Below, in pieces: positions 10,762 through 64,000 of a stretch of DNA of 64,000 bases (its first letter is position 1; every line of letters starts with the position of its first letter). Location: the sequence record PP456879.1. One strand, given 5' to 3'. The translations under genes were made by a program, and so were the position numbers. Below the pieces are notes generated by a model. The model saw only the letters and a program-made list of their open reading frames with translations. It was not told the origin of the DNA and made no database searches.

Positions 10762-12330
10762 CTATTCAGTTTCCTTGATTTCACTATCAACTAGTTTCTC
10801 AAGTACGGTGATCCAGATCATCACACATTTAAACAGATCATTACTAGCTTCAGTGGTGCCAGTTAGATAAGCCTTACCAACATTGGTTGCTTCTTTATCA
10901 GTCATCTGTGCAATGATTTCAGCAGTTGACTCTTTAGAGATACCGCGAATATTATTTAGATGATTTAGGAGGTTATGAACTGCTTTTAGCTGAGCCATAA
11001 CAACATTCTTATCAACTAATAGTTCAACAGTAATTCCATAGTTGGGTTTACCCGGTGCATCAAGAATGGAGAAGTCTACCGCAGCTTTGTCTTTACCAAA
11101 GGTATAAACACGATTACCGGGCACAACCGGGCTAGCATATCGGACACCATTAGCATTAATTTTGGTAGCTGTTCCAAACATACCTTTAGCTAAAGCCAGT
11201 GCTTTATCATCAGTTGTTTTTCCAGCTAAGGCTGCTTTAAGAGCACGCAGTCCATTCTTTTCAATGCTGTCAAATAGATTACGGATTACAGTAACCCCCT
11301 GAACAGGGTCTACACCAACCCAACTCTCACCAGTGTCACCTAGTATCAGATCGCGTGGAATTGCGATAGTACGAACTTCATCGGGTAGTTCATTCTCTTT
11401 AACGCGTTTCATGATCTTATTAACGCGTTCTATTTGATTACTGACATTCTGGCGAATACGTTGATAAGTTTCTACAACAATGCGAATTAGCTTCTTAATG
11501 AAATCTAATGCAACAGTAGATACTTCTTTTGCTTTAGCTTGTAGATTATCTAATACTTCAATAGAAGCTTTAGGCCGAGTTAGCGGTGATATAAAGGATT
11601 CCATTGATGGCACAGTGTTATTAAAATATTTATAGTCAAATGACTCTAGCGCGATGCTAATAGCTTTAGCTAGATCATGATCGACATCATGCCCGCGATG
11701 ATGGCGGTTACTAACTAAACCAATATAGTTTTCTAATGCAGTTTGAACAGATTCTACTTTAGTCAGTTCATTTACAATTGTAAACATTTCAACTGATAAT
11801 GATTCTAGATGATCATCTAGTTCACCAGTGATGATATCTTCAGTAGTTTCCAGTAGTGCGGTGGCATCATAGCCATGGTCTAGCTGCTCAGTCTCATTGG
11901 CTTCCATAATAGAAATGTCTTCATTCGATGGGACATCTGCAATTTGGTGTGGTTTTTTGGTACTAACATTAAGATCTTTAGTATCACTTACTTTAGTGAT
12001 CATTTCATCAGCTGTTTCAGTGATTTCGTTTTCAACACGATCACCTTTAGCTACTTGGAATTCTTTTAGCCCTTGACTAACATGAATCTTCTTATCATTG
12101 ATCTTATCAGCAGTTCCATCAACATCTGGACCTTTGCATACGTCAATTGGGGTATTGGTAACGACATTGGTAACTTCATCACATGGATTTACTTTACCAT
12201 CTTCATCATCTTTTAATTGTTCTGGTAATTCTTTACCAACATCAAGATTGACATTCTTATCTTCAGCATCAGAAACGCGCTCAAGACTTGCAAAGAAATC
12301 CATTGCGGGAACTGTTTTTTTCTTAGCCAT
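10762..12330 (-). CDS. Internal head protein with an acidic propeptide (phiKZ gp162-like)
   Basis: 522 aa; acidic N-terminus, multiple S/A-x-E motifs (ASLE, ALE, PSME). Confidence 0.75.
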   Translation of the reverse strand: MAKKKTVPAMDFFASLERVSDAEDKNVNLDVGKELPEQLKDDEDGKVNPCDEVTNVVTNTPIDVCKGPDVDGTADKINDKKIHVSQGLKEFQVAKGDRVENEITETADEMITKVSDTKDLNVSTKKPHQIADVPSNEDISIMEANETEQLDHGYDATALLETTEDIITGELDDHLESLSVEMFTIVNELTKVESVQTALENYIGLVSNRHHRGHDVDHDLAKAISIALESFDYKYFNNTVPSMESFISPLTRPKASIEVLDNLQAKAKEVSTVALDFIKKLIRIVVETYQRIRQNVSNQIERVNKIMKRVKENELPDEVRTIAIPRDLILGDTGESWVGVDPVQGVTVIRNLFDSIEKNGLRALKAALAGKTTDDKALALAKGMFGTATKINANGVRYASPVVPGNRVYTFGKDKAAVDFSILDAPGKPNYGITVELLVDKNVVMAQLKAVHNLLNHLNNIRGISKESTAEIIAQMTDKEATNVGKAYLTGTTEASNDLFKCVMIWITVLEKLVDSEIKETE

Positions 12331-59194: not shown

Positions 59195-59728
59195 CTAGCA
59201 GCTCTCCAAATAATAGGTAAAAATTTGTGTTGACGCCACGGATTCACGTGGGCGGGTGTTCAACATTTCATTTATCATACTATCAAAGAAAGTATGGTTA
59301 AGTTGAATTGAGACACGTCTAGGATCGCTACTTGCAATGTGCGCACTCTGCTGCACCGCAACCCACAGATTCTCATCTACAGGATATAGGTAATAATCGT
59401 ACACTAAATTACGGTTACCTGCATCCCTAAGTTCATTAGTCGCTAGGCGGCTCTCTAAACGATTGTGTAAATCCTTCATCTTAAATTGTTCAGGACCGTC
59501 TATTTCACCTAACTCAGCAACTTTGATTATCGGGCTTACTGCTAACTTAATATCTAGTTTTTCTGGTAATAGAAAGGGGAAAGCAGTTAAAGCCTGATGT
59601 ATCTCCGCAAGATCATTTACGGAGGTTTCGGAAACTATATAGTTGGTGTCTAACAATTTGTTAAATTGTACACCTGCTGTTTTATATGATTCAAAAACAG
59701 CTTTTGGCATAACCAGAACTTGGGTCAT
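59195..59728 (-). CDS. Minor capsid/virion protein (gp119-like)
   Basis: 177-aa ORF heading the MCP operon. Confidence 0.75.
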   Translation of the reverse strand: MTQVLVMPKAVFESYKTAGVQFNKLLDTNYIVSETSVNDLAEIHQALTAFPFLLPEKLDIKLAVSPIIKVAELGEIDGPEQFKMKDLHNRLESRLATNELRDAGNRNLVYDYYLYPVDENLWVAVQQSAHIASSDPRRVSIQLNHTFFDSMINEMLNTRPRESVASTQIFTYYLESC

Positions 59729-59867: not shown

Positions 59868-61415
59868 ATGTCAAGTCCAAAACAATTACTCGTTTCATGT
59901 ATCACTCTATTATGTTTAGAAAATCGAGAAGATTCTCCAGTGGAACCATCCAATGAATTGGTTACTGAGATTCTTGATACTCTAAATGATAAGGGTGGTA
60001 CATTAGATGTAGATCATGGTCGACAAACATTTTTAGATCTTCGTAATCTACTAGTGGATCTAAATAAGAAACAGAAAGCATATTTCCCAGCTACCCAACA
60101 GGTATTACAATCACTACAAGTATGTTGTCGTGAAGAAAGTTATCTATACGATGCTGTTAAAAATGCAGTAGAAGAAGAATTTCCAAATGGCATGGCATTA
60201 GCCATGCGTGTAACTTCATATCGTCGTGATCTAAATAGCTACTTAGCTGATGAGAAGGTAAAAGCTATTGTAAAAGAATGTTCATCAAAAATTCTTTTCA
60301 ATAGAGGCTCTGCTGATATTCCGGCAATCATTAATGAAATGGCAACCAGAGCTGACCCATATATTCGCGCGCGTGCTGAAGAGAAACACCCAGCTGAAAT
60401 GGGTGCACTTGATTTTGGTAATTTAGATTCTATTGAAGGCTTCTTTGAGGAAGCTAAAACTATTCTTTCCCCAAATGGTGCTTTCCGTACTGGATGGAAA
60501 GGTTTTAACAGGATGCTTGGTGATCTGGGTGCATTAAAACGTGGTGAATTTATTATCGGTGGTGGCCTACAACATCAATATAAATCTGGCGTTTCTATGA
60601 GTCTATTTTGCCATGTGTGTCTATTTAATAAACCATACATGCGTGATATCAATAAGAAACCATTAGTAATGTTTATTACTCTTGAGAATGAGATTCCGGA
60701 TAACCTTATTTTCATTTATGAGTATATTTACGAAAATGAAACAGGTATCAAGGTAGATCGTAGTTCTATTAGTAAAGCTGAAGCAGCTGAATATGTATCA
60801 GCTCGTCTCCGTGAAAATGGTTTTGAACCAGTAATGTATCGTTTTGACCCAACTGAATTTACGATTGCTGGTTTAGTTAACTACCTAGATACATATCAAG
60901 CACGTGGTTATGAACTACAATATCTCTGTGTAGATTATCTAAACATGTTGCCTAAAACTGGATTAGTGACCAGTGTAGCAGGTGATGACGTTCGTCTCCT
61001 ATTTAGGCGAATGCGTAACTATACTGCACCACGTGGTATTACATTCTTTAGTCCGCATCAGTTAAGTTCTCAGGCATTAGAACTAATCAGAGATAATATC
61101 CCACCAGAAGACTTTGTTAAACAAGTTGCTAACAAAGGTTACTATGACGGTTGTCGCCGACTTGGACAAGAACCTGATCTGGAATTCTTCTTCCACATTG
61201 TTAAAGTAAGTGGTAAGTATTATCTAACCGTACAACGTGGTAAACACCGTAACGTTGTAAGTGATAGTAAGCATCACTATTTTGTTATGCCGTTTGATCC
61301 AGACCGTATCGGTGGCATTAGATGGGATATCGATAAAGAAGAAAACAATTACATGGATTTCGTACCAAGTCTTAGTAATATGCAAGCAACTGGTGGAGAT
61401 GACTGGGGATATTAA
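59868..61415 (+). CDS. dnaB: DnaB-like (SF4) replicative helicase (gp118-like)
   Basis: TGWKGFNRMLG..G...GEF, variant Walker A GLQHQYKS, ITLEN, Walker B LCVDYL, SPHQLS, QRGKHR. Confidence 0.88.
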   Translation: MSSPKQLLVSCITLLCLENREDSPVEPSNELVTEILDTLNDKGGTLDVDHGRQTFLDLRNLLVDLNKKQKAYFPATQQVLQSLQVCCREESYLYDAVKNAVEEEFPNGMALAMRVTSYRRDLNSYLADEKVKAIVKECSSKILFNRGSADIPAIINEMATRADPYIRARAEEKHPAEMGALDFGNLDSIEGFFEEAKTILSPNGAFRTGWKGFNRMLGDLGALKRGEFIIGGGLQHQYKSGVSMSLFCHVCLFNKPYMRDINKKPLVMFITLENEIPDNLIFIYEYIYENETGIKVDRSSISKAEAAEYVSARLRENGFEPVMYRFDPTEFTIAGLVNYLDTYQARGYELQYLCVDYLNMLPKTGLVTSVAGDDVRLLFRRMRNYTAPRGITFFSPHQLSSQALELIRDNIPPEDFVKQVANKGYYDGCRRLGQEPDLEFFFHIVKVSGKYYLTVQRGKHRNVVSDSKHHYFVMPFDPDRIGGIRWDIDKEENNYMDFVPSLSNMQATGGDDWGY

Positions 61416-61424
61416 CAACATAAA

Positions 61425-61444
61425 GCTCTCCCTTCGGGGAGAGC
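61425..61444 (+). terminator. Hairpin terminator (cUUCGg)
   Basis: GCTCTCCC-TTCG-GGGAGAGC after dnaB. Confidence 0.85.
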
Positions 61445-61469
61445 ACTATAATTTTAATAGGTAATCTAA

Positions 61470-61838
61470 ATGAGTGCAATTGATAATTTAGTAAATACTT
61501 TAAGAAAGAATATTAGTGAATGTAGAAAGTTTAATCGACCCCTATTTGCACGTGTATATGCCGCATCACAAAATTACGATAAAATCCGTTATGCTGTGGC
61601 AGAAGAAGCCCATTATTTTAAATATGGTAAATATGCAGAAGGTAATAACCTCAATATCGATGAACTTATCAGTGATCTATATCTGTACTACACTATCTAT
61701 GTCGATGTGATCCGTAAACCTTTACCTGATCCTAATGGGGATTTCATCAGTATTGTAAATCAAGATCATTACACGCATATATACTGGGATTTAGATCGGT
61801 GTGAATCTATTCCAGATGATGTAAAGGAGTTAATGTAA
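61470..61838 (+). CDS. Hypothetical protein
   Basis: 122-aa ORF, AGGT SD. Confidence 0.75.
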   Translation: MSAIDNLVNTLRKNISECRKFNRPLFARVYAASQNYDKIRYAVAEEAHYFKYGKYAEGNNLNIDELISDLYLYYTIYVDVIRKPLPDPNGDFISIVNQDHYTHIYWDLDRCESIPDDVKELM

Positions 61839-61839
61839 T

Positions 61840-62076
61840 ATGTACTATGGTAATGTTTATATTATCTTTATTGGTGGTTTATTAATATTTATCCTAGGAT
61901 TGGTATTTGGAGGAATACTGGGAGAAGAGAACAATAACGTATATAAACTCAAATCCCAACAATTTGAATACTGCGTTAAAAATAAACAATCAAAAAATAA
62001 TGACAGTGAAAATATCCAAGTTATTAAAGTATGCGCAGAGTCTATTGTACTCCTATATCCGACTAATGAAAAATAA
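61840..62076 (+). CDS. Small single-pass membrane protein
   Basis: 78 aa; N-terminal TM helix, two Cys in the C-domain; AAGGAG SD. Confidence 0.7.
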   Translation: MYYGNVYIIFIGGLLIFILGLVFGGILGEENNNVYKLKSQQFEYCVKNKQSKNNDSENIQVIKVCAESIVLLYPTNEK

Positions 62077-62083
62077 AGCATTT

Positions 62084-62103
62084 AAGCCCTCATAGGAGGG
62101 CTT
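62084..62103 (+). terminator. Hairpin terminator
   Basis: AAGCCCTC-atag-GAGGGCTT followed by TT. Confidence 0.8.
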
Positions 62104-62107
62104 TTAT

Positions 62108-62715
62108 GTCGTATGGCTAATATGCTAGTGAATAACGAATAAAATCGATTATAGAGCAAATTAGAAGGTATTAAAGGCATAAAGAAAGTCTATCTCTAGA
62201 CTTATTATTTTTAATTAAAAAAAAATATAATCTATACTGTGTCTCCTTTTAGGGAGACAGTATGTATTAGCTAACGCTATTAGAATAATGCTAATATTGT
62301 TTATTATTAGAATAAGGATATACCTTCGGTATAGTTTATTATGAAATAAAAGCCCCTACGGGGCGATCCGATTCCTCAGTTCCACATTAGGTAAGATTCA
62401 TGAGTAATATTTGATTACCAGTATTACTCAATGATACTGGTAATAATATACTAGATTATTAACAATATGTATTGATCATTCTGATTAAGTCAAATTAGTT
62501 AATAAACAAATCAATTATCAACGAGTGATAACGGGTATTGATTACTAGCTAAAGAGATTAATTAGGATATCTACATGAGGAGTCGCTACCCCATGTATTC
62601 TGGAGTTTCTCTTTAGCGGGAGACTTAACTCCACTTGGGAGCCGCTTTAGCGGGCGGCTCTCACTTAAACAAAAAAAGAATTCAGATAAGTCCCTCTCCT
62701 TTAGGAGAGGGGTTG
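62108..62715 (+). ncRNA. Candidate structured non-coding RNA (alternatively an origin region)
   Basis: ~600 nt with no ORF and many hairpins; G-U wobbles and a cUUCGg loop favour the plus strand; TATG motifs at the 5' end, terminator at the 3' end. Confidence 0.4.
62692..62711. terminator. Hairpin terminator, likely bidirectional
   Basis: CCCTCTCC-ttta-GGAGAGGG with U-rich sequence on both strands. Confidence 0.8.
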
Positions 62716-62719
62716 TTTA

Positions 62720-63025
62720 TCATAGGCTTCTCCTTTCGGTTACATAGAACTTCTTCTGATCCATGTCAGTGTATGTTACTATGAAATTGTCGAAGGGGTT
62801 GATGGATACGGCTAAACCTGCGTTGTTGACGTATCCTATTGTAGGGCCAGCCCAATAACCAATGAAGTTACCTCTACGATCTCGACATTGGATAACATTA
62901 TCGGCTTGCGTTTTCGCAACCGACATGCTATGGGTTGATCCATCGGGTCTCTTGAAAAAGAAACCTACTTCCTGCATTCTGTGCAGGTCAGGGCTAACAT
63001 TGTTAGCGGTAACTGGAATTAACAT
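62720..63025 (-). CDS. Hypothetical protein
   Basis: 101-aa ORF, AGAGGA SD. Confidence 0.75.
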   Translation of the reverse strand: MLIPVTANNVSPDLHRMQEVGFFFKRPDGSTHSMSVAKTQADNVIQCRDRRGNFIGYWAGPTIGYVNNAGLAVSINPFDNFIVTYTDMDQKKFYVTERRSL

Positions 63026-63155
63026 GATTGTTCCTCTTGTTAATCCAAGCCCACTTGGGCGAAAATGTTGAGTATTTTTTACTCAACGGCATATAGCCCT
63101 ACTGTTACAGCAGTAGGGCTAATTCTTTTATTCTTAAAAGTTTAACTGAATAAAT

Positions 63156-63177
63156 GCCCTCTCCCGAAGGAGAGGGC
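63156..63177 (-). terminator. Hairpin terminator (cUUCGg)
   Basis: GCCCTCTCC-cgaa-GGAGAGGGC. Confidence 0.85.
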
Positions 63178-63190
63178 TTATGTCGTTAAT

Positions 63191-63466
63191 TTATTTAACC
63201 AGCGATGTTTCCCTAACACGAGAGATGCATAAATAATTACTGTAATCGCTGGGGTCGTACTCATCATACCCTAGACAACTTGTATGAATATATTCAGTAC
63301 TGATATTAATCATATCAAGAGTAATACCATCACCCCATTTCTTAGTTGCCATCTCGATAATATCGGCGATAGTATTGGCTACATAACAATCACCCAAGAT
63401 ATAAAAGGTATCTTCGGTATCATCCGGACGAAAATGACGAATACCATTCTGTGTATATTCACCCAT
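63191..63466 (-). CDS. Hypothetical protein
   Basis: 91-aa ORF, AGAGGA SD. Confidence 0.8.
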   Translation of the reverse strand: MGEYTQNGIRHFRPDDTEDTFYILGDCYVANTIADIIEMATKKWGDGITLDMINISTEYIHTSCLGYDEYDPSDYSNYLCISRVRETSLVK

Positions 63467-63467
63467 G

Positions 63468-63611
63468 TTAATTATCCTCTTTTCCTTCTTGAGTATGATG
63501 AGTGGGCTCTACCCAGTAAAAATCAATAAACAGATCAACTGGTTTACAGCCAACCATCTCGCTGTCATCGGCCCATTTACTTTCATCTACGATAATTTCT
63601 TCATTAGTCAT
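63468..63611 (-). CDS. Small acidic protein, 47 aa (MTNEEIIVDESKWADDSEMVGCKPVDLFIDFYWVEPTHHTQEGKEDN)
   Basis: Hand-translated; AAGGAG SD; fills the operon gap exactly. Confidence 0.7.
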   Translation of the reverse strand: MTNEEIIVDESKWADDSEMVGCKPVDLFIDFYWVEPTHHTQEGKEDN

Positions 63612-63650
63612 TTGTATTTCTCCTTATTTACTATAGTAAATATTGTTTAG

Positions 63651-63863
63651 TTACATAGTCCAATTAGTGGCTTCATCAACCATATCAGCTGCTTCTTTAT
63701 CAGAAGCATTCCAGAGTTTATCAGCCCATTCTTTATCCATTTCATTTTGGATATTTTCAAGACGCATGTAATTATGCCATGCCTGACCCAGTCGAAGATT
63801 CTTATTATTTTTGTAATAAATTCCAAACTCACCACGAACTGATGCAGGAATTGAAATAGTCAC
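63651..63863 (-). CDS. Hypothetical protein
   Basis: 70 aa, GTG start with AAGGAG SD overlapping the upstream stop. Confidence 0.75.
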   Translation of the reverse strand: MTISIPASVRGEFGIYYKNNKNLRLGQAWHNYMRLENIQNEMDKEWADKLWNASDKEAADMVDEATNWTM

Positions 63864-64000
63864 TTTATAATCTCCTTAGTTACTATCTGACGTGCTTCTT
63901 TATAAGAAATATTCGGATTATCATTGATGTATTTAAGAACTTTCTGATGTATAATGTTCTCTCGCTCAGTTAGTTCTTTTACTACTCTTTTAAAATAACC
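63860..64000 (-). CDS. 3' end of a gene truncated by the window edge (...KVLKYINDNPNISYKEARQIVTKEIIK*)
   Basis: 46 open codons ending in a TGA that overlaps the next GTG start. Confidence 0.6.
   Translation of the reverse strand, partial: GYFKRVVKELTERENIIHQKVLKYINDNPNISYKEARQIVTKEIIK

Follow-up and report, generated by a model that had tools for sequence, protein, structure and literature searches.

Genes and features at the locus

The window analysed here is a stretch of 64,000 nucleotides from sequence record PP456879.1. Between positions 61800 and 63200 it matches Pseudomonas phage vB_Pae10145-KEN51 at 100% identity and phiKZ 114191-115590 at 99.6%, with the plus strand of the window corresponding to the minus strand of phiKZ. 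Three tandem hairpins sit within a spacer of ~640 bp that lies downstream of a DnaB-like helicase operon and of PHIKZ117.4/117.3, on which side the last coding end is at 62076 (plus strand), and that is flanked downstream by a convergent minus-strand gene. The spacer (62090-62720, promoter included) is 99.8% identical in the window and in phiKZ, and the 103 nt that hold the hairpins (62566-62668) match phiKZ 114723-114825 at 100% identity. The features of the region are the following:

62420-62468, plus strand: promoter P060, of the phiKZ middle class; the 50-nt TSS-upstream sequence given in Table S3 of Putzeys et al. matches the window
62469-62666, plus strand: non-coding RNA TU089, or '5'UTR_p40', ~197 nt, phiKZ 114922 to 114725 (minus strand), Table S7 of Putzeys et al.
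62474-62571, plus strand: AU-rich 5' domain of the RNA, predicted by folding to be a long imperfect hairpin
62572-62597, plus strand: HP1 (A-type hairpin), UACAUGAGG / CCCCAUGUA, 9 stem positions with one A.C mismatch, loop AGUCGCUA
62601-62633, plus strand: HP2 (B-type hairpin), apex CUUUAGCGGG, loop UUAGCG
62636-62663, plus strand: HP3 (B-type, 3'-terminal hairpin), 11 bp, loop UUAGCG, apex CUUUAGCGGG
62689-62714, no strand assigned: terminator hairpin of phiKZ type, CCCUCUCC/GGAGAGGG, found by terminator scan and within the intrinsic-terminator definition
62720-63025, minus strand: convergent 101-aa gene, PHROG 25431, a Phikzvirus ORFan

No tRNA or tmRNA genes were found by ARAGORN in the window or at the paralogous loci described below. 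A cmscan of positions 61000-64000 against all families of Rfam 15, at E values up to 10, gave no relevant match, and the paralogous loci gave none at permissive thresholds; the Rfam search proposed in a first-pass annotation of this DNA thus matched no family, phage pRNA included.

A published phiKZ transcript ends in the three hairpins

Together the three hairpins make up the last ~95 nt, a structured 3' domain, of a ~197-nt middle-phase non-coding RNA of phiKZ, and the molecule itself is already known as 5'UTR_p40 or TU089. It was discovered by Grad-seq as the '5'UTR of p40' and confirmed on Northern blots as a band of ~180 nt; the RNA is abundant and was found in the RNAP-associated and 30S fractions; no convincing small ORF was found in it and premature termination was suggested (Gerovac et al., 2021; PMC8545117). 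By ONT-cappable-seq it was mapped as TU089, a 197-nt unit without any gene, which starts at the TSS of the middle promoter P060, 114922(-), a start seen by Wicke 2021 too, and stops at terminator T053 (TTS 114725(-)), which ARNold does not call intrinsic, while a readthrough unit, TU088, extends to T051 (Putzeys et al., 2024; PMC10914365; bioRxiv 10.1101/2023.10.13.562163). Table S7 of that study lists Northern probe JVO-18831 and Grad-seq as validation, together with an RNAfold energy of -65.1 kcal/mol (PMC10914365). Both studies read the RNA as a premature-termination product upstream of p40 (PMC8545117; PMC10914365).

The RNA in the window has the same strand, TSS, 3' end, length and folding energy as the published 5'UTR_p40. 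The Table S7 sequence, which begins with gtattgatc and finishes with gctctcactt, is that of window positions 62469-62666, the flanks of P060 and T053 also match, and refolding of 62469-62666 gave -65.1 kcal/mol, equal to the Table S7 value. Expression was mapped in phiKZ, and the window is linked to it by its sequence identity to that phage. The first-pass annotation had proposed the 3' domain of an uncharacterised phage structured RNA and had named transcript detection as a check. The first part is borne out by the ~197-nt transcript mapped on this strand from P060 to T053, and published Northern and Grad-seq data show a discrete species in phiKZ (PMC8545117; PMC10914365). The RNA can no longer be called uncharacterised as a molecule, having been published as an ncRNA candidate, 5'UTR_p40, by means of these two methods, although the term still holds for its function and its loop motifs; our literature search found no functional study of it. 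The two papers describe 'two stem-loops' (PMC8545117; PMC10914365), whereas we find a three-hairpin 3' domain, and neither mentions that the loops are identical and complementary, that there is a paralog at T003, that p39 and p40 are doubtful or that a gene lies on the minus strand.

The 3' end of the RNA lies at window 62665-62666, 2-3 nt past the HP3 stem (T053, position 60 of -60..+40), and HP3 is therefore the element where the 3' end forms or is stabilised. The sequence after HP3, CUUAAACAAAAAAAG, has no U tract; the hairpin falls outside the intrinsic-terminator definition and the terminator scan does not list it. The hairpin at 62689-62714 fits the phiKZ terminator motif quoted in Putzeys et al., lies between the RNA and the convergent 101-aa gene and is probably bidirectional. 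It is not a mapped 3' end of the RNA: Putzeys et al. list no TTS there, and TU088 reads through. A real terminator hairpin thus follows the three hairpins, as had been noted from the letters, but the mapped 3' end comes earlier, at HP3. This terminator is conserved in phage PS119XW, which is without this RNA.

Identical and complementary loops in the three hairpins

HP2 consists of a 7-bp outer stem (UGGAGUU/AACUCCA), a 3-nt bulge (CUU) and a 5-bp inner stem (UCUCU/GGAGA), and the 11 bp of HP3 include the pairs G62638.U62661 and U62646.G62653. In both hairpins the UUAGCG loop is closed by a C-G and then a U.G pair, so that the common apex is the 10-mer CUUUAGCGGG, which is absent elsewhere in the 64-kb window even when one mismatch is allowed. 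The loop of HP1 holds CGCUA, the complement of UAGCG; it can form five Watson-Crick pairs with the B apex, or six counting a U.G wobble. The duplex of the HP1 loop with UAGCG has a computed energy of -6.3 kcal/mol, which is matched by 1.1% of random 8-mers of like composition.

RNAfold recovered HP1, HP2 and HP3 with one extra U.G pair in each B apex, which leaves a UAGC tetraloop and gives HP3 11-12 bp. In the fold of the full RNA, pair probabilities are 0.9-1.0 in HP2, in HP3 and in the lower six pairs of HP1. Sequence reading and folding therefore agree with the first-pass annotation on the position of each hairpin, and the identical UUAGCG loops, their C-G/U.G closure and the complementary loop of HP1 were all found in the sequence as described there.

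Folding of 62560-62730 gives a z-score of -4.0, and folding of the 198-nt RNA as a whole gives -5.4. Several G.U pairs of the stems form on the plus strand only and become A.C mismatches on the other strand, as the same annotation had argued in assigning the RNA to the plus strand; however, the minus strand folds nearly as well (z -4.45), and hence the assignment is based in part on the G.U pairs but mainly on where the transcript has been mapped in the literature. Two elements of the 5' domain, an ACGAG loop at 62518-62522 and a UAGCUAA island at 62546-62552, are also found in the paralog. UAGC occurs three times in the 198-nt RNA and three times in the 165-nt paralog, where ~0.6 copies would be expected by composition (a post-hoc estimate); of the three copies, one lies in the 5' domain, where the fold predicts it to be paired. 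The ideas that the RNA mimics a type I-F CRISPR repeat or carries a boxA-like tail were rejected, the similarity being too short.

Conservation in Phikzvirus and in the sister genus

The 103-nt hairpin region is present in 47 of 47 Phikzvirus records as three haplotypes: 25 records match the window exactly, 15 carry changes at 62599 and 62607, and 7 carry changes at 62599-62601 and 62607. Across the 47 genomes no variation occurs in HP1, in HP3 or in the apex and inner stem of HP2. Natural changes in HP2 are found at 62601 and 62607 only, and HP2 is folded in every haplotype; the change U62607G re-pairs with C62624 and makes the hairpin slightly more stable (-14.8 vs -13.0 kcal/mol). In the 5' domain, U62499C, a natural variant, replaces the U.G pair formed with G62548 by a C-G pair. 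Variable positions amount to ~7% of the whole spacer and to 4 of 92 in the hairpin region. The invariance of the hairpins fits constraint; because the hairpins do not vary, Phikzvirus is too uniform for covariation statistics on this RNA. Outside the genus, Pawinskivirus PS119XW is without the whole promoter-plus-RNA block, which is replaced by a clean gap of ~250 nt between conserved flanks.

The loop motifs recur on different stems in a second phiKZ RNA

In the supplement of Putzeys et al., the string TTTAGCGG recurs in one other phiKZ terminator only, T003 at 12011(-). The T003 locus, at 12.0 kb, repeats the loop motifs of HP1 and HP3 in the same order and in hairpins of the same sizes with different stems. 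Its A hairpin (arms GACAGUGUA and UGCACUGUU, loop GUCGCGAA) is HP1-sized, with 9 bp and 8 nt, and presents a GUCGC loop on another stem; its B hairpin (arms CCCCAUUGG and CCAAUGGGG, apex UUUAGCGG) is followed ~4 nt beyond by the RNA 3' end. The structures of the two paralogs were compared pair by pair, by hand in a script: of the 9 stem pairs, 8 have other nucleotides on both sides in the T003 B hairpin than in HP3, while the 8-nt apex UUUAGCGG is identical. The GUCGC motif is placed one position apart in the two A loops. Upstream, both RNAs share the ACGAG loop (on different stems), GGGUA and UAGCUAA, and their global alignment scores 2.7 SD above shuffles.

The paralog differs from the RNA in the window in having a single B hairpin rather than two, with a U-rich tail past it, and in forming the end of longer transcripts (TU005 and TU007), whereas the RNA in the window has its own nearby promoter. 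Like the latter it faces a convergent gene, and it is dispensable in some lineages. The complementarity of its loops is weaker (-4.6 kcal/mol, 3-4 pairs) and is lowered further by natural variants, to -2.2 kcal/mol in NK1 and -2.7 kcal/mol in OMKO1; conservation of the loop complementarity in the paralog is not clear.

A descriptor scan of 275 kb (98%) of phiKZ found UUAGCG apexes on stems of at least 10 bp at two loci only, both with an A hairpin preceding. The A/B module, that is, an 8-nt loop containing GUCGC and then one or more 3'-terminal hairpins with apex UUUAGCGG, is present in the window, at T003 of phiKZ and in PS119XW, whose helicase locus carries an RNA of the 12-kb type. In PS119XW the cassette includes, besides this RNA, a conserved double hairpin and an 88-aa ORF that shares 83% identity with its phiKZ counterpart. 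A convergent gene faces the module at each of the three loci; a terminase gene lies beside one paralog and the DnaB-like helicase gene beside the other.

In pattern scans of larger collections, phage PA7 was the only real match among the matches listed. A twin-apex scan of IMG/VR gave PA7 and, besides it, tandem-repeat coding sequences, and a scan of IMG/VR for AGTCGC...TTTAGCGG gave 0 hairpins among the 119 matches listed, which were chance matches. In scans with three islands over IMG/VR and JGI metagenomes the real matches were the two PA7 loci only, the others (4 in IMG/VR and 36 metagenome stretches) being without hairpins. The module in its exact form therefore appears to be limited to Phikzvirus and Pawinskivirus; diverged versions would escape scans of this kind.

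The natural variants of the paralog include one compensatory pair (U-A to C-G) and several Watson-Crick/wobble swaps. In NK1 the paralog apex is UUUAGCAG, in which a G to A change makes the U.G pair into U-A, and the stem has three mismatches besides; the apex change keeps the hairpin while weakening loop pairing. In the PA02 lineage hairpin A is deleted, and the homologous B stem is compensated but ends in a different apex, UUAUUAAA. We count this co-loss of hairpin A and of the B apex motif as a single event. In the T2P lineage the paralog RNA is truncated inside the A loop. The module is thus an indel between sister genera and has been lost in some lineages.

Both loop types are under selection across the stem-diverged paralogs and were lost together once. 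The selection that the first-pass annotation had read from two equal loops is in this way upheld, by their invariance in 47 genomes and by the same motifs on different stems in the paralog. The recurrence of the loops in a second phage RNA suggests that they serve as a specific recognition signal.

The neighbouring gene

The phiKZ RefSeq record places two tiny ORFs, PHIKZ117.2 (p40) and PHIKZ117.1 (p39), downstream of the RNA on its strand. Across 17 relatives, PHIKZ117.1 has internal stop codons in 3 of the 5 distinct sequences. The minus-strand 101-aa ORF has a good Shine-Dalgarno sequence, is intact in all relatives (n=17) with a pN/pS of 0.25, and is called by most recent annotations. We therefore regard the p40 and p39 ORFs as doubtful: p39 is not a conserved ORF, and the real neighbour of the RNA is the 101-aa ORF on the minus strand. 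Since p39 is broken and the 101-aa ORF intact, the RNA is better described as a stand-alone gene; it is probably not the leader of p40 but a stand-alone small RNA gene convergent to the 101-aa ORF. The TU088 readthrough transcript is antisense to this gene.

The 101-aa ORF has no Pfam match, and its PHROG match is of unknown function. Searches of 5.8 and 1.8 billion proteins gave no homologues outside the genus, and a single-sequence AlphaFold model (pLDDT 41) was unusable. By BLASTP the 101-aa ORF shows no similarity to the 88-aa ORF of the paralogous cassette, and no family was detectable for either neighbouring ORF.

Discussion

The best explanation of these data as a whole is, in our opinion, a structured 3' domain with cooperating loops, in which loop-loop pairing is the leading mechanism; we hold it tentatively, giving it somewhat less than an even chance. 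In this model the A and B loop types would act together as a sequence-specific module. The A loop would pair with one B apex (CGCUA:UAGCG), with the hairpins lying side by side, and the paired hairpins would make a compact, nuclease-resistant 3' domain, and the other B apex would remain available to a partner, perhaps another copy of the RNA, the 12-kb RNA or a protein. Since readthrough past HP3 occurs in some transcripts, the domain may also limit the antisense RNA that reaches the convergent 101-aa gene. A side-by-side kissing fold is plausible on steric grounds, at the level of a model, the hairpins being adjacent and of similar length. The NK1 pattern, on the other hand, is better explained by a paired apex topped by a UAGC tetraloop than by an open kissing loop, and the weaker pairing in the paralog and the one-nucleotide shift of the motif between the two A loops likewise speak against loop-loop pairing.

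Loop-loop (kissing) contacts between parallel helices are known from P2-P3 of the lysine riboswitch, from ColE1 RNA I/RNA II and from the HIV-1 DIS. The hairpins in the window would resemble these systems in being adjacent, of similar length and capable of 5-6 potential loop-loop pairs; they differ from them in that the complementarity is only partly kept in the paralog and that no ligand or antisense role is known. The first-pass annotation had been reminded of the phi29 pRNA, whose copies join hand in hand through their loops into a multimer on the packaging motor. Each of the two is a structured RNA encoded by a phage and has complementary loops, and there the resemblance ends: the pRNA family (RF00044) gave no covariance-model match at E = 10, the architecture and the phage lineage differ and, unlike phi29 pRNA, the RNA in the window has no link to packaging here, the possibility of multimerisation coming from the computed complementarity.

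A different explanation, which we consider possible though rather less probable, is that the loops are protein-binding sites, so that the RNA would present several UAGC(G/U) copies, as a platform or decoy, to an RNA-binding protein of the phage or the host, for instance an RNAP- or ribosome-associated factor. Identical loops on unrelated stems are a classic mark of loop-specific protein recognition, and such apexes are what HP2 and HP3 present. There are three UAGC copies per RNA in both paralogs, and the NK1 variant retains its hairpin while it loses loop-pairing strength. The RNA co-sediments with RNAP-associated and 30S fractions and not as free RNA (PMC8545117). However, one of the three UAGC copies is predicted to be paired, no candidate protein is found among the neighbours, where the 101-aa and 88-aa ORFs are without detectable family, and protein binding leaves the complementarity between A loop and B apex unexplained. 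Protein-sequestering small RNAs with repeated loop motifs are known in CsrB, RsmY and RsmZ. The likeness lies in a short motif repeated in the hairpin apexes of an abundant small RNA; the motif in the window is UAGC(G), whereas that of the Csr/Rsm RNAs is GGA, and Rfam gave no Rsm or Csr match.

It is unlikely, in our judgement, that the domain is a cis-acting attenuator or insulator only, in which HP3, aided by HP1 and HP2, would stop most P060 transcription before the convergent gene, with the short RNA as a by-product and the loops without function. Premature termination is the reading that both published studies favour (PMC8545117; PMC10914365). It agrees with the partial readthrough of TU088 to T051, antisense to the 101-aa gene, with the convergent gene that faces the module in all three loci, and with an alternative pairing of 62548-62557 with 62608-62617 that lies just 3.2 kcal/mol above the MFE. 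Yet a plain terminator needs no apex that is invariant across stem-diverged paralogs, and in PA02, where hairpin A is missing, the B hairpin is still present under a different apex, which indicates that apex and termination are separable. Moreover, the supposed downstream genes p40 and p39 are doubtful, p39 being broken in relatives, and the RNA is abundant and sediments in complexes (PMC8545117).

As to coupling with translation, the middle transcription of phiKZ runs inside the phage nucleus, away from ribosomes, which makes ribosome-coupled attenuation unlikely. A leader peptide (an SD-like GAGGAG, an AUG and a 7-codon ORF stopping at the UAG of the HP2 loop) was set aside as a separate candidate, since it is not conserved in the paralog and since nucleus-enclosed transcription makes coupled attenuation implausible.

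The other proposal of the first-pass annotation, a set of ssDNA protein-binding hairpins, finds no support here. We give hardly any credence to the reading that the hairpins act in single-stranded DNA, as at a replication origin or packaging signal, with transcription incidental: the hairpins can form on both strands and a terminase gene and the DnaB-like helicase gene adjoin the paralogs, but the stem G.U pairs become A.C mismatches on the opposite strand, the natural changes from U-A to U.G and from U.G to U-A show RNA-type neutrality, discrete RNA 3' ends fall right past the B hairpins at both loci, and the module is an indel between sister genera that was lost in some lineages, unlike an essential origin or pac site.

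Beyond the loop-paired domain that we prefer, a stronger and improbable version, to which we assign only a small chance, is that phiKZ-like jumbo phages have a recognition module of their own, made of the A loop (GUCGC) and the B apex (UUUAGCGG); as a 3' domain held by loop-loop pairing, it would mark a small class of phage RNAs for a specific fate. Possible fates include binding by the phage RNAP or by a factor associated with the phage nucleus, or hetero-multimerisation of the paralogs.

To our knowledge, four points have not been reported previously: the arrangement of three hairpins whose loops are identical and complementary, the occurrence of the paralogous A/B module at T003 and in Pawinskivirus, the joint loss in PA02-like phages and the reassignment of the neighbouring gene. 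They correct the local annotation, since the RNA is probably stand-alone and convergent to a conserved 101-aa ORF, and the invariant loops with their recurrence on different stems offer a handle on mechanism in the form of a small set of nucleotides to mutate. We know of very few non-coding RNAs of lytic phages with a known function, and of none in nucleus-forming jumbo phages. In these phages transcription is physically separated from translation, and signals at the RNA level may for that reason be especially important. If the reading of the loops as a dedicated recognition module is true, they would define a new family of structured RNAs that takes part in regulation in nucleus-forming phages.

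A possible alternative pairing and a short reading frame in the ~197-nt RNA

A segment in the 5′ domain of the ~197-nt phiKZ RNA (window 62548-62557, GCUAAAGAGA) is perfectly complementary over 10 nt to the 5′ half of the second of its three 3′ hairpins, HP2 (window 62608-62617, UCUCUUUAGC). When this pairing was forced, the predicted structure lay only 3.2 kcal/mol above the MFE and, because the cost is so low, an alternative conformer of the RNA appears possible. The first hairpin, HP1, holds a Shine-Dalgarno-like GAGGAG followed 10 nt further on by an AUG at 62593 (window 62577-62616, plus strand), which opens a 7-codon ORF, MYSGVSL, whose stop is a UAG within the HP2 loop. The paralogous RNA does not conserve this ORF, which might nevertheless contribute to the reported co-sedimentation of the RNA with 30S.

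3′ end of the RNA and similar sites

The mapped 3′ end of the RNA falls inside the tail that follows the third hairpin, HP3 (window 62658-62675, plus strand; GCUCUCACUUAAACAA), and this tail may resemble the bacterial rrn boxA sequence. Within the PHIKZ119 coding region (window 59438-59460, plus strand), AGTCGCTAGGCGGCTCTCTAAAC joins the 8-mer of the HP1 loop to the 10-mer that forms part of the 3′ arm in HP3, and its tail is similar as well. Another published 3′ end, T055 (117934, minus strand), lies directly after GGCGGCTCTC, in much the way that T053, that of the ~197-nt RNA, lies after HP3. The resemblance of AGTCGCTAGGCGGCTCTCTAAAC and T055 to HP1, HP3 and T053 may be due to chance, a common processing signal or a read-mapping effect.

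Flanking regions

Upstream of the RNA, in an otherwise diverged spacer, 59 nt (window 62299-62357) are about 90% identical to Pawinskivirus phages. Two hairpins lie in this block, one with a UUCG loop and the other, GCCCC/GGGGC, resembling a terminator on the minus strand; none of the published TSSs or TTSs maps to the block. Two RefSeq ORFs overlap the conserved 101-aa minus-strand ORF:

62862-63071, plus strand: PHIKZ117.1, with internal stops in several relatives
62763-62858, plus strand: PHIKZ117.2

Neither has a ribosome-binding site, and both are probably not genes.

A double-hairpin block and a small cassette

Near the 101-aa ORF lies a conserved element:

63060-63125, plus strand: double-hairpin block, GUUGAGUA..UACUCAAC, then GCAUAUAG, then CCCUACUG..CAGUAGGG, then CUAAUUCUUUU

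Paralogs were found at the phiKZ terminator T004 (12168, minus strand) and in PS119XW (L003 3980-4045), and at each of the three sites a small minus-strand ORF adjoins the block. Against Rfam, the window block gave only a weak, sub-threshold match to 'sar' (E 0.14). A small cassette comprising a terminator, an 88-aa ORF, the double-hairpin block and an A/B-loop RNA (a GUCGC-loop hairpin, then an apex-motif hairpin) occurs at two places:

phiKZ 12.0-12.6 kb (L039): adjoining the terminase gene (Phikzvirus)
PS119XW L003 3600-4200: adjoining the helicase gene (Pawinskivirus)

That the cassette sits at a different position in each genus suggests that it has moved or been exchanged.
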